Below, in pieces: positions 40,076-58,038 of a stretch of DNA of 64,000 nucleotides. The stretch comes from Bugula neritina. Lineage: Eukaryota > Animalia > Bryozoa. Each line of letters starts with the position of its first letter. The stretch's first letter is position 1. The notes beneath the pieces were generated by a model. The model was not told the origin of the DNA. It did not search any database and saw nothing but the letters and a program-made list of their open reading frames with translations. The translations under genes and the position numbers were made by a program. The stretch is taken from positions 10,942,633-11,006,632 of the forward strand of contig OZ037769.1 of assembly GCA_964035545.1 (NCBI GenBank), written 5' to 3'.

Positions 40076-40816
40076 AGAAACTCAAATTTTGGTCTATCAT
40101 AAAAGTCCTACTTGGATGCGCTGTATTAATTTACAATAATATGAATGTTATCATCGCCAAATGCGATACTCCATCAGTCTACCGCCAAGTAATAAAACAT
40201 CAGCCTGCACGTTGTACAGATAAAGTATCGCTTTGATACGAACTTCAAACCAGACCCCCGAACCAATGCATTCGGTGCTGCCTCAAGCAGTTTTCTTGCA
40301 TCTGATGAAAATAACAGTTTACTTATATAGTTACATTTATCAATCTCCTGTGGTCTATAAGGTAGTTTACAGTGTTTTTACCAAGTTAATATTAGTTCAC
40401 TCACAGATTGATATTCATATATTTTAAGACGAAGAGTAAGTCTAATGCTATTTTAAATTGAAATAATCATATTGATATATGAAATAATTAATGTTGAAAC
40501 AGGAAGAATAAAATCAAAGTAGAGATATTCATGTTGAAACTTTCAGTGAAACTGAAAGTGAAATTCAAATAGCTATAGCCATACTCATAGTCATGGTAAT
40601 ACTCATACTCATAGTCATACTGATAGTGATAGTTATAGCCCTACTCTAGACATAGCAGTTAGGTGCAGAAATGGAGATTTTGACTAAAAATTCCTCACTG
40701 AATAGCATTTTTGTTGAAAGCTTTTGACTTGTGTTAGATGAGTCCTACCAACATATTTGGAATTGTAGAGAGCTATGGATACAACTGTTAGACAAGGGCT
40801 GACTAGTGTATCATAT

Positions 40817-42598
40817 TTGTTAGATTGTTGGAGATTTGTTGAAAGTGATAGACAGAGCCCTATCTGATTATTTTGTTAGATTGTTAGATTGTTGAAAATT
40901 CAATGCTTTTATATATAAAAAAGTGTTGGAGATTTGTTGAAAGTGTTAGACAGAGCCCTATCTGATTATTTTGTTAGATTGTTAGATTGTTGAAAATCCA
41001 ATGCTTTTATATATAAAAAAGTGTTGGAGATTTGTTGAAAGTGTTAGACAGAGCCCTATTTGATTATTTTGTTAGATTGTTAGATTGTTGAAAATTCAAT
41101 GCTTTTATATATCTACACTTTTGGAGATTTGTTGAAAGTGTTAGACAGAGCCCTATCTGATTATTTTGTTAGATTGTTAGATTGTTGAATATTCAATGCT
41201 TTTATATATAAAAAAGTGTTGGAGATTTGTTGAAAGTGTTAGACAGAGCCCTATCTGATTATTTTGTTAGATTGTTAGATTGTTGAAAATTCAATGCTTT
41301 TATATATAAAAAAGTGTTGGAGATTTGTTGAAAGTGTTAGACAGAGCCCTATCTGATTATTTTGTTAGATTGTTAGATTGTTGAAAATCCAATGCTTTTA
41401 TATATAAAAAAGTGTTGAAGATTTGTTGAAAGTGTTAGACAGAGCCCTATCTGATTATTTTGTTAGATTGTTAGATTGTTGAAAATCCAATGCTTTATAT
41501 ATAAAAAAAGTGTTGGAGATTTGTTGAAAGTGTTAGACAGAGCCCTATCTGATTATTTTGTTAGATTGTTAGATTGTTGAAAATCCAATGCTTTATATAT
41601 AAAAAAAGTGTTGGAGATTTGTTGAAAGTGTTAGACAGAGCCCTATCTGATTATTTTGTTAGATTGTTAGATTGTTGAAAATTCAATGCTTTTATATATA
41701 AAAAAGTGTTGAAGATTTGTTGAAAGTGTTAGACAGAGCCCTATCTGATTATTTTGTTAGATTGTTGAAAATTCAATGCTTTTATATATCTACACTTTTG
41801 GAGATTTGTTGAAAGTGTTAGACAGAGCCCTATCTGATTATTTTGTTAGATTGTTAGATTGTTGAAAATCCAATGCTTTTATATATAAAAAAGTGTTGGA
41901 GATTTGTTGAAAGTGTTAGACAGAGCCCTATCTGATTATTTTGTTAGATTGTTAGATTGTTGAAAATCCAATGCTTTTATATATAAAAAAGTGTTGGAGA
42001 TTTGTTGAAAGTGTTAGACAGAGCCCTATTTGATTATTTTGTTAGATTGTTGAAAATCCAATGCTTTTATATATAAAAAAGTGTTGAAGATTTGTTGAAA
42101 GTGTTAGACAGAGCCCTATCTGATTATTTTGTTAGATTGTTAGATTGTTGGAAATTCAATGCTTTTATATATCTACACTTTTGGAGATTTGTTGAAAGTG
42201 TTAGACAGAGCCCTATCTGATTATTTTGTTAGATTGTTAGATTGTTGAAAATCCAATGCTTTATATATAAAAAAAGTGTTGGAGATTTGTTGAAAGTGTT
42301 AGACAGAGCCCTATCTGATTATTTTGTTAGATTGTTAGATTGTTGAAAATTCAATGCTTTTATATATAAAAAAGTGTTGGAGATTTGTTGAAAGTGTTAG
42401 ACAGAACCCTATCTGATTATTCTGTTAGATTGTTAGATTGTTGAAAATTCAATGCTTTTATATATAAAAAAGTGTTGGAGATTTGTTGAAAGTGTTAGAC
42501 AGAGCCCTATCTGATTATTTTGTTAGATTGTTAGATTGTTGGAAATTCAATGCTTTTATATATCAACACTTTCAGATATTTGTTGAAAGTGTTAGACA
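40817..42598 (+). repeat. Left subterminal array, ~18 x 98 bp
   Basis: Unit GTGTTGGAGATTTGTTGAAAGTGTTAGACAGAGCCCTATCTGATTATTTTGTTAGATTGTTAGATTGTTGAAAATCCAATGCTTTTATATATAAAAAA; successive units start at 40923 and 41021. Confidence 0.97.
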
Positions 42599-42787
42599 AA
42601 GCTATTTTCAATTATGTTGACTTGCTTGTTGGAAATGTTAAGACAATGTTTTAAATATATTTTACATGTTGAGCTGTCAGAATTGTTAACATTTATGTTT
42701 TTTTCACAAGGAATTCAGATAATAATAAGTAAAATTATGGTAAAGTAAAAAAATTTAAACTATATAGAAATAAAAATAAGTGTTATT

Positions 42788-45268
42788 TCAAAGAAATTTT
42801 CCTTTTTGCTGTTGGTGGATTTCTGTATTCCGGTCCTCTATTATTGAGTATAGGAAAAACCGAAATTTTGCCGCAGTCATGTATTTAACGGTATGCTTAT
42901 ACTTCTTTAGCCAGGAGAATGTTTGCTCTGCACATTCTGTGTTTGCTGCACTTATTTCCGTGAAGATCGGCAAATCTGGATGGTATTTGCATGAGGCTTG
43001 GGAAATGTCACACTCTGCTTTTGTATGACCTCTGATGTGAAATCTGTCTACCAGATATTTCAATTTGCTGAGCTCAGCAGCACCAGCATTTCCGTTCTTA
43101 TGCAGTCGCTCCACAAATGGCTGAAATTCACATGCCCTGTCATAGCCCACATATTTCAACTTGTCTCCATGATCATCTATTAACTTCAACAACTGGACAA
43201 AGAGTTGGCTTGCCGATTCACAAGTGTACATCTCCCGATGATCTATGATTATCCCACAGGGCTTGACAATGGCCATAATCCCAGCTGTTTTTTGATGAAA
43301 TCTAGTTATATTCTTTGTTTTTTTGCAGCCAATATTTTCATCTTCTTCTTGCATCTTTACCACATCTTTACTCACATCAACAATCCTAGATGATACAGCT
43401 TGATCTGGCACATTAATTGTCACTATGATGTGTTTGTCAACAATGTCTGAATCTAAAAATTGATGATCTTTGCAATATACCGACGAGGATTTGTTTTTTC
43501 CTCCTAAAGTTGGTGTGTTTGGGCAGCAACCTATAGTGTTGGGCATTCCCTTCCCTAACTTAAAATGTTGTTTAGGAGCAGCACAAATTCTTCTGTTTAT
43601 TTTTTCATTGCCATCACACATAACAAATCCCTCTGAGCAACCTTTTATTTTACAATTGTGAGCAGCCCATTTACTGTTCTGTGCGAATATTATTTCAGCT
43701 GCTTCATCACACACGTCATCTATGGCAAGCCGGTTAGCTATATTATCTTTTGAGAAGCTGACATTGTTATTGAAGTATTTTAATAGCTGGGCTATAAAAT
43801 AAACATCTTCTAGTCTGGTTTTAAAAACTTCTCCTCTGTACTCATCTGAGCCATACAGCTTACTGTATCGCTCACAGAGCTCCCCAAAGCTGCGACCTAG
43901 TTGAATATCAACTAGCACTTCTTTAAGGTAATCCAATGTAAAGGCTGTTGACCGGCTTGTCATCATAATTTTATCGTCCTTTGATGTTGTGTAGAATGTT
44001 CTGCTGGTGTTGGTTTCTTCATAAGTTGGAAAATATGCAGTCTTACATTTGCTGCACGTAGTGTGATACACTTGTGCTGTTGACATACCATCTCGTGTAT
44101 ACACTACAACTTCCGATGGCCGATCTTTGTCTATCTTCATAATCTACATTAGTGAAAAGTTGATAACATACACTGGTACAAAGGTTTTTTACTACTCTAG
44201 CTATCAAGGTTGGAGTCAATTACATGGTAATGTAATTAATTACAATTACAAGATTATTTGTCCTAACAAGAGAGTACTAAATGTTATTTAATCTCATTTC
44301 TGGGGCAATTTTGACAACTGAAAACCTTCTTTGTTCTTAACAGTAAAAAATAGGTTGATAAATATGACATTAAATTCAAAAACATTAGCAATTCTTTATT
44401 AATTACAATTACAATCAAATTCTTATACATCAATTACAAATTACATTCAATTACTTTAGTAAATGTAATTAATTACAACCAATTACAACTACCCCAACTC
44501 TGCTAGCTATTCATAATATATAATACCAGATACGCATATACACTAATGAAATACTTTTAATGATTTAAATATTAACCGACCTGGTCACAACATAGCTTCT
44601 TTTTTGGTAAAAACACCATATGAGATTTTAAAGGAAGGTTGTACACCATCAAATTATCTTCCCCAATGATCCGGAACACTTCTTTGTAAAAACTGCTGCA
44701 CTCATAGTTACTCTCTTTATGCTTTCCAGCTCCAACCTAATTTTAAATTTAAAACATTTTATTTTGTAATACACATTGCCTCTTATCCAATTCATAAACA
44801 TTAAAAGGGTGTTTTCAAAAATTTCCATATGTGACTAGCTTTCTACAGGAAGCCATGCGATTACCTAGAGTTTCTGCCAATATCTCATTACTTTAAACTA
44901 AGCATTTAACCAAAGTTATCGTATTTACTGTTGTGCGATGATATTTTACTAACAACGGTGTATGATATTCAGTTAATTTACAACATTTCTTTTTTTTCAT
45001 TACATCTCTCAAAAAATATTTAGAAAAACTTCAAATACAAAATTATTAAATTTCTAGTGAATCAATTATATTGTCGTAAGCTAGTTTCTAAATCAACAGA
45101 AACACTCACAGTTATTTTTGTAAGCTCTCCATAGCTTTGAATCTTGGCCAAATGGTCTTTAATGTAACTGGTAATTTTCTTCCATCTGAAAGGAGTTCCC
45201 TCTGGGACAGCAAAGTATGCATAAGCAAACAATGGCATTATTCCAGCTATCAGGGTAAACTGAGGCAT
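42788..45268 (-). CDS. KDZ transposase with CxC5/CxC6-like cysteine clusters (~556 aa)
   Basis: Exons 45110-45268, 44581-44736, 42788-44143 with phase 0 joins; the true start may lie further upstream. CCDQ...VVVYTRDG...CSKCKTAYFPTY is CxC5-like; HNCKIKGC...RICAAP...CPNTP...YCKDH is CxC6-like. Catalytic-type motifs CDGNEK, VKPCGII, GYDRACEF, VDRFHIRGH and NTECAEQTFSWL. No stops or frameshifts. Confidence 0.88.
44205..44502. mobile_element. 298-bp non-autonomous hAT-like MITE in a transposase intron
   Basis: 8-bp TSD CTAGCTAT at 44197-44204 and 44503-44510; termini CAAGGTTGGAG ... CCCCAACTCTG; repeated GTAATTAATTAC/AATTAC subterminal motifs. Confidence 0.8.
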
Positions 45269-46329
45269 GTCAATGTTTGTAGTATCTATAAAATGATACT
45301 CATATAGTTAGAAATATGTTGAAGTGTCTTTTTGAAAGTAGTTATGTAACGTATGATTATACTGTAGAACTATTTATATATGTGGCAAAGAAAACTATTA
45401 CCACTACAAACTTTTTCATTAGATCACAAATTTTTTTTTAAACTTCAACTACAACTATATATTTGTCAGATGCATTTCAATTAATTATACTAGAAATACA
45501 ACAACTTGTCTTATAAAAAAATATAGATGTACATCCAGCAAATTATATATAACTTTAAAAGTATATTGAATGAATTGCACAATTGAAATATCAAGTAAAA
45601 ACTTTTAATGTACATGTCCTAATTCTAAGATTGAAAGCAAAATATAGCAATATTGCTGCGCAACAGTAAAATAATTGAGATAGGTAGCTTAAGTATTTTT
45701 AACTCATACTAAATTTGGGTGTGAAGTTCATTTAGAGTAAAAAAACATTATGCAAAAACTTGAAATAATATACATTTGTGTGAATACTAATTTTAAAAAT
45801 ATTGTTGTATATACATATATATACAGACAAATACTCACATGTACATTTAGAGCATTACGATCAGTGGAAAAATTGAGATAGCCTAAGTTCACTAATTCGG
45901 TTTAAGAAAACGACTTCTTATGGTAAGTTTCTAATTTTGCCCTTTACTTAACCTACCTCTACGTAATGTGATGTAATCAGGCAGAGATCTCCCTCTATAG
46001 AATGACACTCTTTGCTATGATTCTTGCTTTAGAGTGACACTCTAGCTTACACAGCCTGACTAGGAATAGGGAGGGTTTTAGCCGTGATCAGAGTTTATTT
46101 GAATCACCAATGTTGATCAAATACTGACTGTAAAAACTAAAATAATAATGATACAACATAAGGCATAATGATATTAACGCAAACAAAATGTATGTAGTAT
46201 AATAAGTATGTATGTAAAGGCACTAGCAATGTATATCATAAATTGTAGATAGCAGCATGAAATAACAATTCAACCTAGCATGTAACTACAGTCCATATTA
46301 TTGAAACTTTATAGTATAAAAATGTAATC

Positions 46330-46332
<3 letters not shown>

Positions 46333-46402
<70 letters not shown>
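46333..46402. repeat. (TA)n microsatellite
   Basis: Pure TA run. Confidence 0.95.
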
Positions 46403-46406
<4 letters not shown>

Positions 46407-46526
46407 AAATAGAAGTTTGTTACCTTTTCTCTCTCTCCTAATCTACTGTTATGTTGATGCTGTGGCTTTGCACAGTCTTTCAAATAATGCTACTCTTTGG
46501 TAGTCTTACATAAACTTAAAAAATGT

Positions 46527-46912
46527 TGTCTAAACTGACAGCATGACTAACAATATTGCAACTACTAAAAATGGTTTTGTCTTATATACTAATCCATTTG
46601 ATAAACATTATTGCGTTGTAAGAGGTATGGTTTCACATTTTAGCTATTTTGGGGTAGGATCTTACTGTTTCAAAGAAGTGGGCTGAAGTAAACAAACACC
46701 TGTGACATCACAGCTGATGCAAGCATAACTGCTGACTATGAATCATTCTACATGCGTAGCTACTGTTTTGGGGTAGTAATTAAAGAAGCATTAGGTTGAC
46801 TACTGGCAGCTAGTGGTTATATAGGCTAATTGAAGGTTGATGACATTGTGATTGTGCGTGATGGTACTACGAGTTATAATTCCTGTAAACATCCTATTTC
46901 GTAACATTACAC
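46527..46912 (-). repeat. Left arm of the central ~390-bp inverted repeat (LTR-like)
   Basis: Reverse complement of 48275-48665; the inner part is nearly identical and the outer part has scattered mismatches and small indels. Confidence 0.95.
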
Positions 46913-48274
46913 CCTCCTTGTAAGAGATAGAGATAATAAAGTGTTGGTATAGTTGTGCTGTAAATCTTGAGGAAATGCTAACTTATGCACTTTTAGATAG
47001 CATGTCAGATACCGCATTTGTAACCAACCAAGTTGTTAGTAAGCTATAAACAGCTACAAGCAAACCAGTTTCTCTTAAACTAACAACAATGACAGCTGAC
47101 AACTTGGAAATGAAGTGTAAGGTGTACAATAACTTGACTATTAGAGGACTGAACATGCATGAGCAGATACAAGTAGGATAGACTTACAGTACGGACAGCA
47201 TTCTAATTAACAAGCAGCACATACCCACACCAGAAATTGCCAATAGATGGCCACACCTTAAATGCATTGCAGGTAAAATACCACAAGGTTTAGATATAGA
47301 GATATGAATTTTTATAGGGTATGACAGCTCCAGAGCTTTAGTGCCACTTGAAACTAAAATAGGCCTTGCAATCAATGATCCCTTTGCTCTGAGAACACCT
47401 CTAGGATGGTGTATTGTAGGCAATAGTGGTAAGCATGAAACAAACTCATTTCCCACATGCAATAGGGCTATGGCTCATGAGCAGAACTTGAGTTCAGATA
47501 TCTTGAATGTCCTACAGCAAGATTATACTGACACAAAGTGCATTGCTACTCATAAAATGTCACAGGAAGATGCCAAGTTTTTAGATAACATGCGCAACAA
47601 TATTAAACAAAGAAAAGACAATTATTACAGCATGCCACTGTCATTTAAAAATGCTAAGCCACAATTACCAGACAATAGACAAATAGCTGTGCACAGACTT
47701 GATATCCTCAAAACTAAAATGCTTAAAGACCAGAAATATGAAACAGATTACGTGGCATTTATGGCAGACATAATAAACAATGGCGATGCAGAATTGGTAC
47801 CTACAAATTGTGAGGCAAGCAAACATCAGTGGTACATTCCCCACTTTGGCGTGTATCACCCCAAAAAGAAAAAGATTGGTAAAGCATAAAGGTAGCATAA
47901 CTCCCAGACTCACAATTATTGACTTGACAGATGCTAAACATCTTATACTGCAGTGGGTACAAAAAGGGTCATTTTCAGATGAATATTACAGGCTAAGTAA
48001 AGACAAATGTGTAAGTAAAGATAGAAACACATAAAACTGAGATGACTTAATTCGTAAGGTAAAAGTGCAACTAGCAACTACAGAGTTGAACAGTAAAGGT
48101 GTGAGACTAGCTCCACTCAAATATTTAGATAGGCCTATCCACAAATTAATTTACCTATTTACCCCATAACCTTTGCATGCATACCTATATTAGTATTTTA
48201 GCTTAGTATCTTAAATGCATAATAATATAATTGTTAATTCCCTCTAAGTGAATAGATAGAAATTAAAGGGTCGA
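46913..48274 (+). pseudogene. Internally deleted Bel/Pao LTR-retrotransposon pol relic
   Basis: Protease-downstream region HIPTPEIANRWPHL...FALRTPLGWCIVG; RT start WYIPHFGVYHPKKKKI; abrupt jumps to LTDAKHLILQWVQKGSFSDEY and then the integrase C-tail RKVKVQLATT...LDRPIHKLIYLF. Contains stops and lacks the RT core. Confidence 0.85.
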
Positions 48275-48665
48275 GTGTAATGTTATGAAATAGGATGTTT
48301 ACAGGAATTATAACTCGTAGTACCATCACGCACAATCACAATGTCATCAACCTTCAATTAGCCTATATAACCACTAGCTGCCAGTAGTCAACCTAATGCT
48401 TCTTTAATTACTACCCCAAAACAGTAGCTACGCATGTAGAATGATTCATAGTCAGCAGTTATGCTTGCATCAGCTGTGATGTCACACGGTGTTTGTTTAC
48501 TTCAGCCCACTTCTTTGAAATAGTGAGATCCTACCCCAAAATAGCTAAAATGTGAAATAATACTTCTTGCAACACAATATGATGTTTATCAAATGGATTA
48601 GTATATAAGACAAAACCATTTTTAGTAGTTGCAATATTGTTAGAGTCATGCTGTCAGTTTAGACA
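48275..48665 (+). repeat. Right arm of the central inverted repeat; probable Bel/Pao 3' LTR
   Basis: Follows the integrase tail and a purine-rich AAAGGGTCGAG; begins TGTAATG at 48276 and ends AGACA at 48665; contains TATATAA at about 48365 and 48602. Confidence 0.75.
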
Positions 48666-48744
48666 GTAAAGCAGTAAAGCTCGCCTGATACAGACTACAT
48701 CCAGACTACACCATCTTGGTATTTATACTTAGAATTATAATAGG

Positions 48745-51545
48745 ATGGACACTAACGCAGATACTGATATAACCAATCTCAACTGTGAAGCTATGTCAGT
48801 AGAAAGCACTGAAATTACTATTACAGATACTTCTGAACATGTAAGTATTTGAATTGTTATTAGTAGCTATGGATTTGCATTATTATATTTATACAACTAT
48901 TCTTCTATATCTTGGTAAGGAATAACATTTCTAGGAAATTATAAATGACCAATTGTATTTTTATTTAATAATTTATCATTTAAACCATATTTTACTTACT
49001 TCAGGTAAATCCTGATCCATTATGGGAAGTTCTCCCCAACACTCCGCTGGTAAAGCTATTAGATGATACTTCAAAAGAAGCCTCTGTCAACATCTCGATG
49101 CTGTTGCTACCGGTTCTCACAATTGTGTCTGGATTGATGGGGATTTCTACTGTCTCAACTCATAGGGATGAGATCAACTTTACTGAACCAAATATAATTT
49201 GGTCTGCAGTGGCTGCTCCTCCAGGTTAAACATCATAATCACATATCATGAATGTTGATGTTTATTAACTAATGACTATTAAAATGCCTAAATTATGAAG
49301 AGAACAGAATTTTATTCAAAACCATTTATCAGTCTTTTGCTTAGCATGATTAGAGCTTTTTTTACCCAAACCCCCACGCTTGTATGTTAGGATAAATTAT
49401 TAGTATTTTTTATTTACTGTTACCTAAAGGGTCTCGAAAAACAGTGGCATTGAAGTGTCTGTTGGCAGCCCTCAAGCGAGTGAAAGACACTGTGTGTAAT
49501 GAACAAGCTGAAACAAGTTTTAGTGGACTTTCAACGCAAGGTAGTTATGCAATGTTTCATAATATTTGCAGTTTAAACTTTTGCTGGAAAAAATAACTGC
49601 TCTTTCAGATAAGCATTGTTTTTTCACTTTACTGATAAAAATTTTTCTGTTGCTATTTACTATAGAACTTCTTTATATATAGATAATGAGCCATGTCTCT
49701 CTCGCCTTTTCTGCTCAAATGAAACAATCACTATGGCAAAATTGCATGAGCAATTATCCACCAATAACGGAACTTATCTTAATATACTGGATGAGATTGA
49801 AGGCTTGTTCGAATGTCTAGACAATAAGGGAAGACCAGATTCCCTAGATAGACGAGTTTGGCTAACACTATCTGGTGGTGGGAGCTGGGCCCGAAACAGC
49901 AAGCAAGGCCTACAAGAAATAGAAGAAACAAGATTAAATTACACAGGTACACAAAAGTTCAGTGTGTACATGTAAAATTTCTTTATTTCCTTTTCTTGTA
50001 GTTTGCAGTTTATTGGCTACTGTTCTATTATTTATTAAAAGAAGTGTTGTACAATGGTATATAATATATTTTACCTGTTGAAACTTTATACAAAATCTTT
50101 CATATAACTTCTAGGCTTTCTTCAACCTCGGCTGCTCAACCAGCGCATGAAGAGAGGCGATATAGACGGGTTTTTAGACCGCCATTTGATATGCTTCACC
50201 ACAAAGCGCCATGTAAAGTTTCAAGAGATAGGAAAGCGAGTGGAGAGTGGGAAAGATCTGTTCAATCTTTTTTTGAAGGTGTTTCAAAATCACCATTGTT
50301 CAGAGGTAAAATTTTAAGTAATGCATATATGCTGAATAGTATAAGTCTATATGTATTTGAATCTGCCAAGATAGCTAGTAACTGGTTTGGCATGTAGCTG
50401 GATTTTAAAACTGGATAAGTTATAAGTTGTATGCAAGTGAATCGTGTGTAAAAAAGTTCATTTTCATTAAAATTATGTATTTGGATCTTTATAAATTTTA
50501 ATTGGTTAAGAGACTTGAAATGTATTGTATGTATTGCATTATTTAGTATTTAATATTTGTGAGGCCACTTTTTCAGAAGAACTTCTATAAACTAAATTCA
50601 GAAGCGGGAACATTGTTCGAACATTATTTTGATGAGATGGAGGCAAAAACGTCTGACCTCCCAGCAGCTGATCCGTCTTTGGGACTGGTAAATAAATCTT
50701 CTGTAAGTAAAATTTCGGCAATTTACAAACTTTATAAGCTAGCTTTTACAAATTTCATTGCCTATGTACCAAAAAAACGCTACAGATATTTGCAAATATT
50801 ACTATGTTACGATAACTCAAAGTCACAAGCTTTAAAAATATGAAGTGTGAGAATCTCTTTTACCCAGAATTGTTTTCTAATGAAATTCAGTATCATAGAT
50901 GCAGCTCAATCCATACATGTTTGTAAACACCTTATTGTGTAAACTTATAGTTGCTTGATTGTAATTATGCAGGGTTATGTCCTACGATTGGCCATGGTGC
51001 TGGAAGCGGCAAGCAATGCACTTGAGGAAGGAGTGCCAGGGACTAGAATTGTACAAGCAAGCAGCATGACACAGGCAATTGCAGTTATGCGGCATCTTGA
51101 TGGTTGGAAATTAAATATCATTGGGATGCCTCAAAGAAAGGGTGAACAGGCTGAAGAGGTTAGTGTTTCGAAAAAAAATTGCAATAATGAACAAAGCAAT
51201 TACGATATATGTTGCGAAGCTGCTGTTAAAATATAAAACAATTGAAAATGTGGAGCAAATCATCTTTGGAACCTTCCAATGACTGTTCAAGAAATATATG
51301 TTATGAATTTGCAGAATAGCAGTTACTATGGGGCAATGACCGAAGAACAATTTTTGGAGCTCAATGCGACAAAGAGGTTGCATGCTCTAAAAGAGAAGGT
51401 GATAACAGCAAGGACGCTGCAGCAGAACAAAATAATCAAAACTGCGAGTGAATGCAAGGATTTTTTGATGGCGGCAGAAAAAATAGGACTTGGAACTATA
51501 ACACAAGGAGCAAGAAAAAACTCCATGTATTTTATAAAGAAATAG
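48745..51545 (+). CDS. DUF3987/YfjI-like P-loop AAA+ ATPase (putative MCM-related helicase), 474 aa, 8 exons
   Basis: Exons 48745-48840, 49005-49224, 49430-49540, 49683-49946, 50115-50305, 50577-50702, 50973-51158, 51315-51545 join in frame. EPNIIWSAVAAPPGSRKT is the Walker A (split by an intron); LNILDEIEGLF is the Walker B; also DRRVWLTLSGGGSWARNS, TGFLQP, DGFLDRHL (arginine-finger-like), GYVLRLAMVL and a possible C-terminal winged helix. Confidence 0.82.
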
Positions 51546-51738
51546 AGGATGAGTTGTTTTACATTGATGCTATTTAGAGTAATGTATTTTTTATATTTTA
51601 GCAATTAAATTATTAAATGCTCAAAATGTCAAAAAAATTAGTGTTATGACTATTTTTAATTGAATGGAAGCATGAAATGATCGGCTTCACAGCATAGAAG
51701 CATTCAACAAATACATTGCAGGAAAAAACAATGTACAA

Positions 51739-54700
51739 ACACTTTCAACAAATCTCTGAAAGTGTAGATATATAAAAGCATTGAATTTCCAACAATCTAA
51801 CAACCTAACAAAATAATTTGATAGGGCTCTGTCTAACACTTTCAACAAATCTTCAACACTTTTTTATATATAAAAGCATTGGATTTTCAACAATCTAACA
51901 ATCTAACAAAATAATCAGATAGGGCTCTGTCTAACACTTTCAACAAATCTCCAACACTTTTTTATATATAAAAGCATTGGATTTTCAACAATCTAACAAT
52001 CTAACAAAATAATCAGATAGGGCTCTGTCTAACACTTTCAACAAATCTTCAACACTTTTTTATATATAAAAGCATTGGATTTTCAACAATCTAACAAAAT
52101 AATCAGATAGGGCTCTGTCTAACACTTTCAACAAATCTCCAACACTTTTTTATATATAAAAGCATTGAATTTTCAACAATCTAACAATCTAACAAAATAA
52201 TCAGATAGGGCTCTGTCTAACACTTTCAACAAATCTTCAACACTTTTTTATATATAAAAGCATTGGATTTTCAACAATCTAACAATCTAACAAAATAATC
52301 AGATAGGGCTCTGTCTAACACTTTCAACAAATCTCCAACACTTTTTTATATATAAAAGCATTGGATTTTCAACAATCTAACAATCTAACAAAATAATCAG
52401 ATAGGGCTCTGTCTAACACTTTCAACAAATCTCCAACACTTTTTTATATATAAAAGCATTGAATTTTCAACAATCTAACAATCTAACAAAATAATCAGAT
52501 AGGGCTCTGTCTAACACTTTCAACAAATCTTCAACACTTTTTTATATATAAAAGCATTGAATTTTCAACAATCTAACAATCTAACAAAATATTCAGATAG
52601 GGCTCTGTCTAACACTTTCAACAAATCTTCAACACTTTTTTATATATAAAAGCATTGGATTTTCAACAATCTAACAATCTAACAAAATAATCAGATAGGG
52701 CTCTGTCTAACACTTTCAACAAATCTCCAAAAGTGTAGATATATAAAAGCATTGAATTTTCAACAATCTAACAATCTAACAAAATAATCAGATAGGGCTC
52801 TGTCTAACACTTTCAACAAATCTTCAACACTTTTTTATATATAAAAGCATTGGATTTTCAACAATCTAACAATCTAACAAAATAATCAGATAGGGCTCTG
52901 TCTAACACTTTCAACAAATCTCCAACACTTTTTTATATATAAAAGCATTGGATTTTCAACAATCTAACAATCTAACAAAATAATCAGATAGGGCTCTGTC
53001 TAACACTTTCAACAAATCTTCAACACTTTTTTATATATAAAAGCATTGAATTTTCAACAATCTAACAATCTAACAAAATAATCAGATAGGGCTCTGTCTA
53101 ACACTTTCAACAAATCTTCAACACTTTTTTATATATAAAAGCATTGGATTTTCAACAATCTAACAATCTAACAAAATAATCAGATAGGGCTCTGTCTAAC
53201 ACTTTCAACAAATCTTCAACACTTTTTTATATATAAAAGCATTGGATTTTCAACAATCTAACAATCTAACAAAATAATCAGATAGGGCTCTGTCTAACAC
53301 TTTCAACAAATCTCCAACACTTTTTTATATATAAAAGCATTGAATTTTCAACAATCTAACAATCTAACAAAATAATCAGATAGGGCTCTGTCTAACACTT
53401 TCAACAAATCTTCAACACTTTTTTATATATAAAAGCATTGGATTTTCAACAATCTAACAATCTAACAAAATAATCAGATAGGGCTCTGTCTAACACTTTC
53501 AACAAATCTCCAACACTTTTTTATATATAAAAGCATTGGATTTTCAACAATTTAACAATCTAACAAAATAATCAGATAGGGCTCTGTCTAACACTTTCAA
53601 CAAATCTTCAACACTTTTTTATATATAAAAGCATTGGATTTTCAACAATCTAACAATCTAACAAAATAATCAGATAGGGCTCTGTCTAACACTTTCAACA
53701 AATCTCCAACACTTTTTTATATATAAAAGCATTGGATTTTCAACAATCTAACAATCTAACAAAATAATCAGATAGGGCTCTGTCTAACACTTTCAACAAA
53801 TCTCCAACACTTTTTTATATATAAAAGCATTGAATTTTCAACAATCTAACAATCTAACAAAATAATCAGATAGGGCTCTGTCTAACACTTTCAACAAATC
53901 TCCAACACTTTTTTATATATAAAAGCATTGGATTTTCAACAATCTAACAATCTAACAAAATAATCAGATAGGGCTCTGTCTAACACTTTCAACAAATCTT
54001 CAACACTTTTTTATATATAAAAGCATTGAATTTTCAACAATCTAACAATCTAACAAAATATTCAGATAGGGCTCTGTCTAACACTTTCAACAAATCTTCA
54101 ACACTTTTTTATATATAAAAGCATTGGATTTTCAACAATCTAACAATCTAACAAAATAATCAGATAGGGCTCTGTCTAACACTTTCAACAAATCTCCAAA
54201 AGTGTAGATATATAAAAGCATTGAATTTTCAACAATCTAACAATCTAACTAAATAATCAGATAGGGCTCTGTCTAACAGTTTCAACAAATCTTCAACACT
54301 TTTTTATATATAAAAGCATTGGATTTTCAACAATCTAACAATCTAACAAAATAATCAGATAGGGCTCTGTCTAACACTTTCAACAAATCTCCAAAAGTGT
54401 AGATATATAAAAGCATTGAATTTTCAACAATCTAACAATCTAACAAATTAATCAGATAGGGCTCTGTCTAACACTTTCAACAAATCTTCAACACTTTTTT
54501 ATATATAAAAGCATTGAATTTTCAACAATCCAACAATCTAACAAAATAATCAGATAGGGCTCTGTCTAACACTTTCAACAAATCTCCAACACTTTTTTAT
54601 ATATAAAAGCATTGAATATTCAACAATCTAACAATCTAACAAAATAATCAGATAGGGCTCTGTCTAACACTTTCAACAAATCTTCAACACTTTTTTATAT

Positions 54701-57641
54701 ATAAAAGCATTGGATTTTCAACAATCTAACAATCTAACAAAATAATCAGATAGGGCTCTGTCTAACACTTTCAACAAATCTCCAACACTTTTTTATATAT
54801 AAAAGCATTGAATTTTCAACAATCTAACAATCTAACAAAATAATCAGATAGGGCTCTGTCTAACACTTTCAACAAATCTTCAACACTTTTTTATATATAA
54901 AAGCATTGGATTTTCAACAATCTAACAATCTAACAAAATAATCAGATAGGGCTCTGTCTAACACTTTCAACAAATCTCCAACACTTTTTTATATATAAAA
55001 GCATTGGATTTTCAACAATTTAACAATCTAACAAAATAATCAGATAGGGCTCTGTCTAACACTTTCAACAAATCTTCAACACTTTTTTATATATAAAAGC
55101 ATTGGATTTTCAACAATCTAACAATCTAACAAAATAATCAGATAGGGCTCTGTCTAACACTTTCAACAAATCTCCAACACTTTTTTATATATAAAAGCAT
55201 TGGATTTTCAACAATCTAACAATCTAACAAAATAATCAGATAGGGCTCTGTCTAACACTTTCAACAAATCTCCAACACTTTTTTATATATAAAAGCATTG
55301 AATTTTCAACAATCTAACAATCTAACAAAATAATCAGATAGGGCTCTGTCTAACACTTTCAACAAATCTCCAACACTTTTTTATATATAAAAGCATTGGA
55401 TTTTCAACAATCTAACAATCTAACAAAATAATCAGATAGGGCTCTGTCTAACACTTTCAACAAATCTTCAACACTTTTTTATATATAAAAGCATTGTATT
55501 TTCAACAATCTAACAATCTAACAAAATAATCAGATAGGGCTCTGTCTAACACTTTCAACAAATCTCCAACACTTTTTTATATATAAAAGCATTGGATTTT
55601 CAACAATCTAACAATCTAACAAAATAATTAGATAGGGCTCTGTCTAACACTTTCAACAAATCTCCAACACTTTTTTATATATAAAAGCATTGAATTTTCA
55701 ACAATCTAACAATCTAACAAAATAATCAGATAGGGCTCTGTCTAACACTTTCAACAAATCTCCAACACTTTTTTATATATAAAAGCATTGGATTTTCAAC
55801 AATCTAACAATCTAACAAAATAATCAGATAGGGCTCTGTCTAACACTTTCAACAAATCTTCAACACTTTTTTATATATAAAAGCATTGGATTTTCAACAA
55901 TCTAACAATCTAACAAAATAATCAGATAGGGCTCTGTCTAACACTTTCAACAAATCTCCAACACTTTTTTATATATAAAAGCATTGGATTTTCAACAATC
56001 TAACAATCTAACAAAATAATCAGATAGGGCTCTGTCTAACACTTTCAACAAATCTTCAACACTTTTTTATATATAAAAGCATTGGATTTTCAACAATCTA
56101 ACAATCTAACAAAATAATCAGATAGGGCTCTGTCTAACACTTTCAACAAATCTCCAAAAGTGTAGATATATAAAAGCATTGAATTTTCAACAATCTAACA
56201 ATCTAACAAAATAATCAGATAGGGCTCTGTCTAACACTTTCAACAAATCTTCAACACTTTTTTATATATAAAAGCATTGGATTTTCAACAATCTAACAAT
56301 CTAACAAAATAATCAGATAGGGCTCTGTCTAACACTTTCAACAAATCTCCAACACTTTTTTATATATAAAAGCATTGAATTTTCAACAATCTAACAATCT
56401 AACAAAATAATCAGATAGGGCTCTGTCTAACACTTTCAACAAATCTCCAACACTTTTTTATATATAAAAGCATTGAATATTCAACAATCTAACAATCTAA
56501 CAAAATAATCAGATAGGGCTCTGTCTAACACTTTCAACAAATCTTCAACACTTTTTTATATATAAAAGCATTGGATTTTCAACAATCTAACAATCTAACA
56601 AAATAATCAGATAGGGCTCTGTCTAACACTTTCAACAAATCTCCAACACTTTTTTATATATAAAAGCATTGGATTTTCAACAATCTAACAATCTAACAAA
56701 ATAATCAGATAGGGCTCTGTCTAACACTTTCAACAAATCTCCAACACTTTTTTATATATAAAAGCATTGAATTTTCAACAATCTAACAATCTAACAAAAT
56801 AATCAGATAGGGCTCTGTCTAACACTTTCAACAAATCTTCAACACTTTTTTATATATAAAAGCATTGGATTTTCAACAATCTAACAATCTAACAAAATAA
56901 TCAGATAGGGCTCTGTCTAACACTTTCAACAAATCTCCAACACTTTTTTATATATAAAAGCATTGGATTTTCAACAATCTAACAATCTAACAAAATAATC
57001 AGATAGGGCTCTGTCTAACACTTTCAACAAATCTTCAACACTTTTTTATATATAAAAGCATTGGATTTTCAACAATCTAACAATCTAACAAAATAATCAG
57101 ATAGGGCTCTGTCTAACACTTTCAACAAATCTCCAACACTTTTTTATATATAAAAGCATTGGATTTTCAACAATCTAACAATCTAACAAAATAATCAGAT
57201 AGGGCTCTGTCTAACACTTTCAACAAATCTTCAACACTTTTTTATATATAAAAGCATTGGATTTTCAACAATCTAACAATCTAACAAAATAATCAGATAG
57301 GGCTCTGTCTAACACTTTCAACAAATCTCCAACACTTTTTTATATATAAAAGCATTGGATTTTCAACAATCTAACAATCTAACAAAATAATCAGATAGGG
57401 CTCTGTCTAACACTTTCAACAAATCTTCAACACTTTTTTATATATAAAAGCATTGGATTTTCAACAATCTAACAATCTAACAAAATAATCAGATAGGGCT
57501 CTGTCTAACACTTTCAACAAATCTCCAACACTTTTTTATATATAAAAGCATTGGATTTTCAACAATCTAACAATCTAACAAAATAATCAGATAGGGCTCT
57601 GTCTAACACTTTCAACAAATCTCCAAAAGTGTAGATATATA
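51739..57641 (-). repeat. Right subterminal array, ~60 x 98 bp, inverted relative to the left array
   Basis: Units are reverse complements of the left-array unit and share the same variant types. Confidence 0.97.
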
Positions 57642-58038
57642 ACATAATGTGGAGAAAATGAAAATGTTGTATAGTAAATTTTTATATGTGATTTCCAATA
57701 TCTCCATTACTGCACCTACCTCAGACATAGTGACAGTGATGTGCAACTTAAAACAGAGACACCCATGGTCATGGTGCTGGTGTTGCAGCATTGTGACTGG
57801 CTTTAGAGCTGAGGCAAGTAGGGATTTCTCTACCCCTTACTCAGCAACAAGCTTAAGGCCAGTTTCATAATTTATCATTATGACTTATTGACTATCGTTT
57901 ATGACTACTTAGCAATTAAAATGTGAAAGGAAAGATACCATTTACGATATTCAAATTATTGTTATTAGTGTTACTATAGGTTCATGACTGTCACCATGAT
58001 TGTGACTAAAATAGTCGTACTCGCTGATGGTAATAGTA

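Follow-up and report, generated by a model that had tools for sequence, protein, structure and literature searches.

A young 17-kb KDZ transposon of Bugula neritina that links its transposase to a predicted MCM-like ATPase

A DDE transposase accompanied by an AAA+ partner is a classic bacterial design. To our knowledge, no eukaryotic DDE transposon is known to depend on a motor protein, and no such case was found in the searchable literature. Among KDZ transposons, the target-site duplication (TSD) is 8 bp in Zisupton and Dileera and 7 bp in Kyakuja (PMC12730594), and Zisupton in the strict sense has a transposase with a SWIM zinc finger and a CxC4 cluster (PMC11343200). Proteins with DUF3987 belong to the SF6 helicases; they are related to MCM and carry a winged helix at the C-terminus, and no eukaryotic virus had an SF6 helicase in a survey of 2016 (PMC4889955). 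One DUF3987 protein has been proven to be an ATP-dependent 5'-3' helicase (PMC11724360). No mention of a KDZ gene paired with an ATPase or helicase was found in the searchable literature, nor was such a partner mentioned in the KDZ literature searched.

Here, a 64,000-nucleotide stretch of contig OZ037769.1 from Bugula neritina (the window) was analyzed. Positions 40656-57722 hold a complete, very young 17-kb cut-and-paste KDZ transposon (Table 1). These bounds, proposed in an earlier note on this DNA together with an 8-bp TSD, proved to be exact, with AGACATAG at both flanks. The terminal inverted repeats are imperfect, and the differences between the left and right ends were constant in every copy compared within the genome. 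A genome search returned >40 matches to the left end, all of which started exactly at window base 40656, and the 8-bp flanks were identical at 7/7 paired elements. Therefore, the structure of the element is not due to chance. The 27-nt inverted ends and the 8-bp duplications, perfect at each of 7 independent insertions, also place it among the KDZ transposons.

Table 1. Positions of the features of the element within the window.
Feature	Position	Strand	Remarks
Left TSD, AGACATAG	40648..40655		Read directly; identical to 57723-57730
Left terminal inverted repeat	40656..40682	+	27 nt, 23/27 positions match the right end
Left subterminal array	40826..42602	+	18.3 units of 98 bp, Tandem Repeats Finder
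Transposase main exon	42788..44140	-	450-aa ORF, CxC5 zinc cluster and predicted KDZ DDE core; Pfam, homologues, AlphaFold
Probable transposase first exon	45100..45268	-	N-terminal helical region; profile match E 0.007; boundaries approximate
BEL/Pao LTR copy 1	46480..46912	-	Sense points left, toward the transposase gene
Central inverted repeat, arms	46547-46912 and 48275-48643
BEL/Pao pol fragment, internally deleted	46968..48270	+	Nested foreign element
BEL/Pao LTR copy 2	48275..48665	+	Sense points right, toward the helicase gene
Predicted DUF3987/SF6 MCM-like AAA+ ATPase gene	48745..51545	+	About 8 exons; partner-profile matches
ATPase open segments carrying exons (1-4)	48745-48849, 48984-49224, 49430-49593, 49613-49972	+
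ATPase open segments carrying exons (5-8)	50108-50314, 50547-50840, 50943-51233, 51246-51545	+
Right subterminal array	51738..57626	-	60.2 units, same 98-bp repeat inverted, Tandem Repeats Finder
Right terminal inverted repeat	57696..57722	-	Imperfect, 23/27 vs left end
Right TSD, AGACATAG	57723..57730		Read directly

The element had also been described as mirror-symmetric. The arrays and ends are indeed inverted, but the two arrays are very unequal, with lengths of 1.8 kb (left) and 5.9 kb (right). The 9-mer TGGAGATTT occurs once per 98-bp unit and is present also in the left terminal repeat. It was matched 50 times, compared to 0.9 matches expected, and its polarity is mirrored between the two sides. 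TGTTRRA motifs recur in each array, alongside an AT tract. The central inverted repeat of the earlier description is present as well, but it is a nested, rearranged remnant of a BEL/Pao LTR retrotransposon and not part of the transposon design. The orientation of the LTRs was derived from L084, and the ATG of the helicase gene lies 80 bp beyond the second LTR copy. At many other genomic loci the LTR sequence of about 430 bp is found as a pair of direct LTRs, the pol fragment has at least 13 independent copies elsewhere in the genome (95-97% identity), and a full-length BEL/Pao relative carries Peptidase_A17, DUF1759, DUF5641, and integrase domains.

The leftward gene, read previously as a KDZ transposase, was assigned by Pfam on the minus-strand 450-aa ORF. 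Both domains scored above their cut-offs: KDZ (PF18758) with 37.3 bits (cut-off 26.6, E 3.2e-9) and CxC5 (PF18718), a CxC-type cluster, with 39.7 bits (cut-off 26.9, E 6.3e-10). The KDZ domain was recovered also by a six-frame scan of the genome. A SWIM domain, as in strict-sense Zisupton, was not found by Pfam in the 450-aa ORF (E up to 0.1), although an exon further upstream might hold one. The probable first exon aligns to the KDZ family profile (positions 13-51), and the corresponding region is present in homologues of 600 aa. The exon layout between this exon and position 44140 is approximate and may include further exons. The AlphaFold model of the ORF (pLDDT 81.7) matched the folds of ISCth4 (Z 10.9 over 264 residues), Tn5 (9.2), IstA (8.8), TnsB (8.5), and MuA (8.3), and those of integrases. 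The predicted core of the transposase is thus a DDE/RNase-H fold behind a CxC5 zinc cluster. Asp176, Asp334, and Glu405 of the ORF are the candidate catalytic residues. They are invariant in 28 sequences and are located in the model on a strand, a strand end, and a helix, respectively, as expected; these three residues would carry out the catalysis. The window transposase retains all residues that are invariant in the family.

Seven segments of the rightward gene are collinear with a profile of full-length DUF3987-type proteins that partner a KDZ transposase (positions 25-445 of 492, best E 2.6e-16), and all segments of the gene are open also in copies C4 and C8. One splice junction, 49224|49430, was checked by eye; the Walker A motif (A-A-P-P-G-S-R-K-T) spans this junction, and the Walker B motif (L-D-E-I) lies in the exon 49613-49972. 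The lysine-threonine pair of Walker A and the aspartate-glutamate pair of Walker B are both conserved across the ATPase family. Walker A has no second glycine, which counts against a helicase role; this deviation is common to MCM proteins. When the plus-strand open segments between 48984 and 51542 were compared one by one to Pfam DUF3987 (PF13148), they reached 12.6-16.9 bits, which is below the cut-off of 27, and a six-frame genome scan found no match to this Pfam family. Members of the partner profile score 90-105 bits against the same family.

The evidence on the ATPase fold comes from a full-length homologue, P0119, which is 23-40% identical to the window protein and matches Pfam DUF3987 at 8e-30. 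Its model (pLDDT 87.9) matched MCM AAA+ domains with Z 14-16.8 over 248-274 residues, and a winged helix was predicted at its C-terminus (residues 367-463, fold matches with Z 6-7). The homologue thus shows the domain order of DUF3987/SF6 proteins, with the MCM-like AAA+ core first and the winged helix at the C-terminus. On this basis the second gene is predicted to encode a DUF3987/SF6 protein with such an architecture, and the earlier reading as a helicase-like AAA+ ATPase gains fold support. The non-helicases RavA and BchI belong to the MCM-clade AAA+ proteins too, which also counts against a helicase role. Fusion or adjacency to a primase, which is usual but not universal in DUF3987/SF6 proteins, was not observed; the element contains two genes and the nested BEL/Pao fragment, with no primase or polymerase, and the neighbor at paired loci elsewhere is KDZ.

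The AAA+ protein of the same two-gene transposon could alternatively be a non-helicase that acts like MuB, TnsC, TniB, or IstB. As an ATP-dependent, DNA-bound oligomer it would capture target DNA, activate the transposase, and perhaps confer target immunity. Bacteria repeatedly combine a DDE transposase with a neighboring AAA+ partner, and the transposase fold matches to IstA, TnsB, and MuA agree with this alternative. So do the DNA-binding winged helix of the homologue model, the lack of an accompanying primase or polymerase, and an obligate linkage as would befit a direct partner of the transposase. However, the ATPase fold falls into the MCM clade (Z 16.8), whereas TnsC was matched just with Z 6.2 over 133 residues, and one characterized member of the DUF3987 family unwinds DNA (PMC11724360). 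An initiator/loader AAA+ fold of the MuB/TnsC/IstB type was therefore not found. This makes membership in that group less likely, while the protein could still act as its members do. We regard this alternative as possible but not probable.

Seven insertions were found in the Bugula neritina genome, each with its own perfect 8-bp duplication. Both genes are carried by three intact full copies and by a fourth, disrupted copy, and both are open in three copies; the other full copies keep the two genes between the same ends, flanked by different duplications. The window copy differs from C4 by 5 mismatches in 9,135 bp and from C8 by 43. The transposon family is young and recently active, in agreement with the earlier proposal of a two-component mobile system, possibly recently active. 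An array-only element of 11.8 kb also has a perfect 8-bp duplication. Therefore, ends and arrays are sufficient in cis, and gene-less derivatives composed of these parts alone have also moved.

The pairing extends beyond this genome. At metagenome loci found via the ATPase alone, a KDZ gene was located head-to-head with the ATPase at 17/17 testable loci. The same pair occurs on five long ENA/NCBI contigs and in Clytia hemisphaerica, and in Clytia and in L055/L059 it is likewise flanked by inverted subterminal arrays of 85-139 bp. The divergence of the two proteins is tightly correlated (Mantel r 0.954, p 1e-4, 13 pairs). Transposase and ATPase have been inherited together, as a single unit, over very deep divergence. 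Pairs annotated as 'uncharacterized protein', such as those in Clytia, are transposon genes, which calls for caution among annotators.

An accidental pairing, in which a host or viral ATPase gene lies inside a KDZ element or was lately captured by it, would fit the seven introns of the ATPase gene, which are host-gene-like, and the nested BEL/Pao fragment, which implies that the element can pick up DNA. It is contradicted by three observations: the ATPase family profile matches this genome only within copies of the transposon, with no copy elsewhere as a host gene; the same pair, with correlated divergence, is present in Clytia and >20 unrelated contigs; and an old, decayed KDZ and ATPase pair is also present in the Bugula neritina genome. 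We consider such a pairing extremely improbable.

The helicase might also aid the element outside the transposition chemistry and stay linked through this benefit, for example by clearing chromatin or silencing marks, by resolving structures that arise from the long inverted arrays when host DNA is replicated, or in host-transposon conflict. KDZ and other transposons carry probable anti-silencing genes such as TET/JBP (PMC12730594), and the additional ORFs in Cryptococcus KDZ elements have no known role (PMC11343200). The long inverted arrays could stall forks, and the defense AAA+ protein BrxL matches the ATPase homologue with Z 12.3. Optional cargo is usually patchy, however, whereas here the ATPase was present at all 17 testable loci, and its rate of divergence equals that of the transposase. 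Moreover, relatives whose arrays are short (3 to 5 units) retain the helicase gene. These points make an accessory function of this kind rather unlikely.

The element is very probably an autonomous two-gene DNA transposon of the KDZ superfamily. That the helicase is a required co-factor, unwinding element DNA at a synthesis-coupled step, has in our estimate about an even chance. The transposase would bind the motifs of the ends and arrays, pair the ends, cut them, and join them to the target with an 8-bp stagger. The helicase would form a ring on DNA of the element itself, and its winged helix might load it at the iteron-like arrays with their AT tracts. Its unwinding would be coupled to DNA synthesis, either in gap repair that restores the donor or in copying of the excised element, and cut-and-paste would thereby be turned into a net gain of copies. 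A replicative role would need host enzymes, as the element encodes no primase or polymerase. The data demand no replicative step, because deletion derivatives are also expected from plain cut-and-paste with abortive gap repair. As a whole, the two-gene transposon with this helicase role is the best explanation, and we hold it to be as probable as all else together.

A more far-reaching and doubtful possibility is that the element is part cut-and-paste transposon, part self-replicating episome. After excision by the DDE transposase, the MCM-like helicase would load at the iteron-like 98-bp arrays and host primase and polymerase would be recruited, so that the excised copy would be replicated before reintegration. 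If true, this would be a eukaryotic counterpart of the post-excision replication of SCCmec and SaPI; no such mode of transposition has been described for eukaryotic DDE elements. Should the helicase drive copying of the excised element, cut-and-paste elements would have a new route of copy gain. An animal KDZ lineage keeps a predicted MCM-like SF6 helicase linked to its transposase, and DUF3987, a helicase family of phage and plasmid type, is now placed within eukaryotic genomes. The system is young, intact, and compact, with two genes, defined ends, and a gene-less mobilizable derivative, and is suited for testing what a helicase does for a transposon.

Compared to the described KDZ transposons (Zisupton of fish; KDZ1-3/KDZx1 of Cryptococcus), the element has the same KDZ domain behind an N-terminal CxC cluster, terminal inverted repeats, an 8-bp TSD as in Zisupton and Dileera (PMC12730594, PMC11343200), large size, and extra genes beside the transposase. 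In contrast, the accessory genes described in those elements are TET/JBP dioxygenases or ORFs without recognizable domains, whereas long inverted 98-bp arrays, spliced genes, an animal host, and a transposase in which no SWIM was found distinguish the element studied here. With the DUF3987/SF6 helicases of phages, plasmids, and integrative elements (AgaPH; phage N4 dns) it shares encoding on mobile DNA, Walker A and B motifs, and, judging from the homologue model, a winged helix C-terminal to the MCM-like core (PMC4889955). In prokaryotes these helicases act in replication, fused to an AEP or DnaG primase or encoded next to one (PMC4889955, PMC11724360), whereas here the neighbor is a DDE transposase, with no primase, in a eukaryotic host.

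The model of P0119 also matched the helicases of SCCmec (Cch, Z 10.0, 5dgk_B) and of SaPI replication (Z 7.7, 8tch_B; Z 7.6, 7ola_A). SCCmec and SaPI carry MCM-like helicases on recombinase-moved elements that are thought to replicate after excision, and SaPI origins are built from iterons, which the 98-bp arrays recall. Unlike the present element, they are bacterial, use serine or tyrosine recombinases instead of a DDE enzyme, and have no such duplications or inverted ends. The pairs MuA/MuB of Mu, TnsB/TnsC of Tn7, and IstA/IstB of IS21 likewise combine a DDE transposase, of a fold matched by our model, with an adjacent, co-inherited AAA+ ATPase; their ATPases differ in belonging to other AAA+ clades and in being prokaryotic target selectors rather than helicases. 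Helitrons are, like this element, eukaryotic transposons with a helicase of their own, which in their case is a Pif1-type SF1 helicase fused to an HUH nuclease, and their movement is of the rolling-circle type, with neither duplications nor inverted ends.

The element at 40656-57722 has defined ends. The 8-bp target-site duplication reported in the earlier note was read in the window as AGACATAG on both sides. The 23-bp terminal inverted repeat described there was found as inverted ends, but these are imperfect, with 23 of 27 positions identical. Similarly, the proposed mirror symmetry holds for the inverted 98-bp subterminal arrays, but not for their sizes, which are lopsided (see table). The insertion borders a 12-bp/18-bp tandem repeat (ATAGTCATACTC-like), whose minus strand would translate as a Met/Thr/Ser-rich repeat. 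Because this repeat is potentially coding, the insertion may have split a coding exon of the host.

Features of the element in window coordinates, followed by other insertions in the B. neritina genome (contig:position)
Feature	Position	Strand	Size	8-bp duplication	Remark
Bordering tandem repeat, left	40575-40654
Target-site duplication, left	40648-40655			AGACATAG
Element, window copy	40656-57722		17,067 bp	AGACATAG	two-gene full copy
Left 98-bp array	40826-42602		18.3 units
Transposase, open frame	42788-44140	-	450 aa		lies between arrays
Match to N-terminal region of longer transposases	45268-45100	-
Central inverted repeat, left arm	46547-46912
Central inverted repeat, right arm	48275-48643
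Helicase gene, string of open segments	48745-51545	+			lies between arrays
Right 98-bp array	51738-57626		60.2 units		inverted unit
Target-site duplication, right	57723-57730			AGACATAG
Bordering tandem repeat, right	57731-57870
C8 copy	C8:6195058-6210419		15,361 bp	AATATTTA	two-gene full copy
C4 copy	C4:11708273-11731106		22,834 bp	TAAAAGAT	two-gene full copy; tandem duplication of left 6.77 kb (loci L021, L040, L022)
C5:8.70 Mb copy	C5:8701702-8720833		19,131 bp	CATTTTTA	two-gene full copy; 2 nested insertions, transposase broken
C2 copy	G000:C2:21862096-21873874		11.8 kb	GTCTGATG	non-autonomous (loci L025, L043)
C4:16.75 Mb copy	C4:16.75 Mb			CTCAATCA
C3 copy	C3			GATTGAGC

The 216-Mb assembly, in which the window is G000:C5:10942633-11006632, was searched for further copies. 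The left end gave >40 matches, every one starting at window base 40656, and the right end gave 28, terminating at 57722 or one base further. When paired ends were fetched and their flanks read, a perfect private 8-bp duplication was found at each of seven independent insertions. Other copies thus keep both genes between the same ends with different duplications, as the earlier note had anticipated. Over a 9,135-bp core, the window copy differs from the C4 copy at 5 positions and from the C8 copy at 43. In all three of these copies the transposase frame is open, as is every helicase exon segment. This is a young transposon family.

In the C4 copy, the left end is present twice and the right end once. 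The tandemly repeated left 6,767 bp of this copy comprises the end, the array, the transposase gene, the left long terminal repeat (LTR) and part of the spacer of the nested BEL/Pao fragment (described below), and the duplication TAAAAGAT pairs the right end with the outer left end. The breakpoint lies at ~47,350 (window coordinates), ~35 bp or less from the place where the C5:8.70 Mb copy carries a 4.7-kb insertion.

Derivatives of the family have been mobilized in trans. The C2 copy consists solely of the ends and ~110 98-bp units within a perfect duplication, and represents a mobile satellite-like array. Two further non-autonomous relatives are a 5-kb deletion derivative that lacks the transposase and a rearranged element of 4.3 kb. 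An old decayed transposase-helicase pair, likewise in divergent orientation, is present at C4:13.37-13.39 Mb. Units of ~300 bp bearing both transposon ends were observed at loci L029-L037 (e.g., G000:C6:13463831-13464129). They were rejected as free MITEs because their flanks are conserved (CACAATAT on one side and its near-complement on the other), which places them inside a larger repeat; they seem to be an old miniature copy with its 8-bp duplication that was amplified within this repeat.

The central inverted repeat of the earlier note is present, but it is BEL/Pao-derived and not a design feature of the transposon; the latter interpretation was rejected since each arm, like the spacer, is a BEL/Pao repeat in its own right. 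The arms are copies of a ~430-bp sequence found genome-wide as direct pairs 4-7 kb apart, and the 1.3-kb spacer recurs alone at at least 13 other loci with 95-97% identity. A full-length BEL/Pao relative at locus L084 (G000:C2:14233400-14241500) has 430-bp LTRs; between them, a single 1893-aa gag-pol frame runs without interruption and contains Pao peptidase A17, DUF1759, DUF5641 and integrase domains. The L084 family is the source family of the nested fragment, and its deletion derivatives are also multi-copy. Judged by these sequence relationships, the element centre is a rearranged, internally deleted fragment of a BEL/Pao LTR retrotransposon. Its acquisition predates the spread of the present copies because all of them carry it. 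Oriented by L084, both LTR copies face outward. The left LTR points to the transposase gene and the right one to the helicase gene, with the helicase ATG lying 80 bp past the right LTR. In relatives, the intergenic gap between the two genes is only 0.25-1.6 kb. Given this orientation and the proximity of the genes in relatives, the LTRs may now provide the promoters for both genes.

The transposase frame matched the Pfam families CxC5 (6.3e-10) and KDZ (3.2e-9), each over its cut-off. Its homologues are 31-52% identical and have the same Pfam domains, and some are ~600 aa long. The N-terminal region of these longer proteins is matched by a minus-strand segment of the window (E 0.007; see table), which indicates that the transposase gene has at least one upstream exon. 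All residues invariant across 28 sequences are kept in the window frame. The AlphaFold model of this frame (pLDDT 81.7) has the fold of DDE enzymes, matching the ISCth4 transposase (Z 10.9, 264 residues aligned), retroviral integrases (Z about 9), Tn5 (Z 9.2), IstA (Z 8.8), TnsB (Z 8.5), MuA (Z 8.3) and Hermes (Z 7.8). In the model, the invariant D176, D334 and E405 are located on a strand, a strand end and a helix, the places expected of a DDE triad, and are therefore candidate catalytic residues.

The plus-strand segments of the window gave weak but correctly ordered matches to DUF3987 in Pfam, and a six-frame scan of the genome with this family gave no match. Because single exons were too weak for Pfam, a profile of full-length partners was used instead. 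The window exons were searched singly; the fold was examined in full-length homologues that have no introns. Among 1.84 billion representative proteins, the largest exon had 59 relatives, including two such homologues, P0119 and P0098, which match DUF3987 at 8e-30 and 2.3e-25, respectively. Seven window plus-strand segments matched, in order, positions 25-82, 77-111, 128-202, 201-264, 264-291, 305-379 and 397-445 of the partner profile (A1; 28 full-length proteins, 492 positions). One splice junction could be read directly, with the donor after 49224 and the acceptor before 49430. At this junction, the Walker A motif reads A-A-P-P-G-S-R-K-T, where the family has A-A-R-K-G-E-K-K-T; Walker B is L-D-E-I.

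When the partner profile was searched against Protein Data Bank sequences, only chance pentatricopeptide matches were returned, which made a fold search necessary. The model of P0119, a homologue and not the window's own protein (pLDDT 87.9), matched MCM AAA+ domains (Z 14-16.8, 248-274 residues aligned), BrxL (Z 12.3), RavA (Z 11.8), BchI (Z 11.2), ComM (Z 10.6), the SCCmec helicase Cch (Z 10.0) and SaPI replication helicases (Z 7.6-7.7). A winged helix occupies residues 367-463. The helicase-like AAA+ ATPase proposed earlier is thus upheld as an MCM-like core with a winged helix in this homologue. The same architecture is described for DUF3987 proteins, SF6 helicases that are distant relatives of MCM, carry a winged helix at the C-terminus and usually adjoin a primase (PMC4889955). 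For one family member, ATP-dependent 5'-3' helicase activity has been proven (PMC11724360). The main rival reading is that the protein acts on target DNA, in the manner of MuB, TnsC or IstB, though the P0119 model matched TnsC only at Z 6.2. Under the preferred reading, a helicase ring would assemble on the element DNA and unwind it at a step linked to DNA synthesis, and the transposase would bind the ends and array motifs and carry out cut-and-paste.

The ATPase is obligately linked to the transposase. All helicase-profile matches in the genome lie inside transposon copies, which shows that the helicase is not a host gene, a possibility raised in the earlier note. A head-to-head KDZ gene stands beside a helicase homologue in NCBI assembly GCA_029782575.1, in Clytia hemisphaerica and in four ENA assemblies, in one of which neighbouring immunoglobulin-domain genes indicate an animal host. 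For the window's own genome, the BEL/Pao elements together with the cnidarian relatives suggest a marine invertebrate. When JGI/ENA metagenome contigs were scanned with the helicase profile alone, 23 loci were found; of these, the 17 with ≥2 kb of upstream sequence all had a head-to-head KDZ gene, and the other 6 had too little flank to tell. In metagenome contigs with transposase homologues of ~50% identity, the helicase is a few kb off in tandem orientation. These closest relatives (L048-L052, ENA; ~50% protein identity) also have introns in the helicase gene. As the window and all other relatives are head-to-head, one gene was inverted in one lineage.

Pairwise divergences of transposase and helicase were correlated over 13 pairs (r 0.954; 0 of 9,999 permutations as high), indicating co-inheritance without shuffling, which is not independent proof of interaction. 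The interaction prediction for the two proteins (score 0.00) counts neither for nor against it. Across the genomes compared, their sequences identify KDZ transposase and helicase as a conserved unit. A role of the helicase outside transposition is a further rival to unwinding of the element. B. neritina also has a separate, unrelated group of short KDZ-domain matches (C2:21322318, C7:12131759, C8:3609300, C5:3329691, C8:989524), none with a helicase match nearby; the partner is therefore not carried by every KDZ element in this genome.

Most 98-bp units contain the left-end 9-mer TGGAGATTT once; it is on the plus strand in the left array and on the minus strand in the right array (50 matches observed, 0.9 expected). 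Inverted subterminal arrays of 85-139 bp likewise flank the gene pair in relatives with only about one-third of their protein residues shared. On the strength of this recurrence and of the mobilized array-only element, the arrays are likely cis-acting binding sites. A related KDZ-helicase element, from an ENA assembly, has ~600-800 bp of degenerate telomere-type (TTAGGG-like) repeats (L055:3989-4793) immediately beyond the transposase gene's 3' end.

The searchable literature on DUF3987 concerns bacteria or phages throughout, with no eukaryotic case, and SF6 helicases were in no eukaryotic virus as of the published survey (PMC4889955). A tblastn search of phage genomes with the partner gave a single weak match, to an unannotated record (25% identity, E 3e-7), which is uninformative on origin. 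The KDZ elements described in the searchable literature carry TET/JBP genes or additional open reading frames without domains, and no ATPase partner was found there; the present family carries an MCM-like ATPase.
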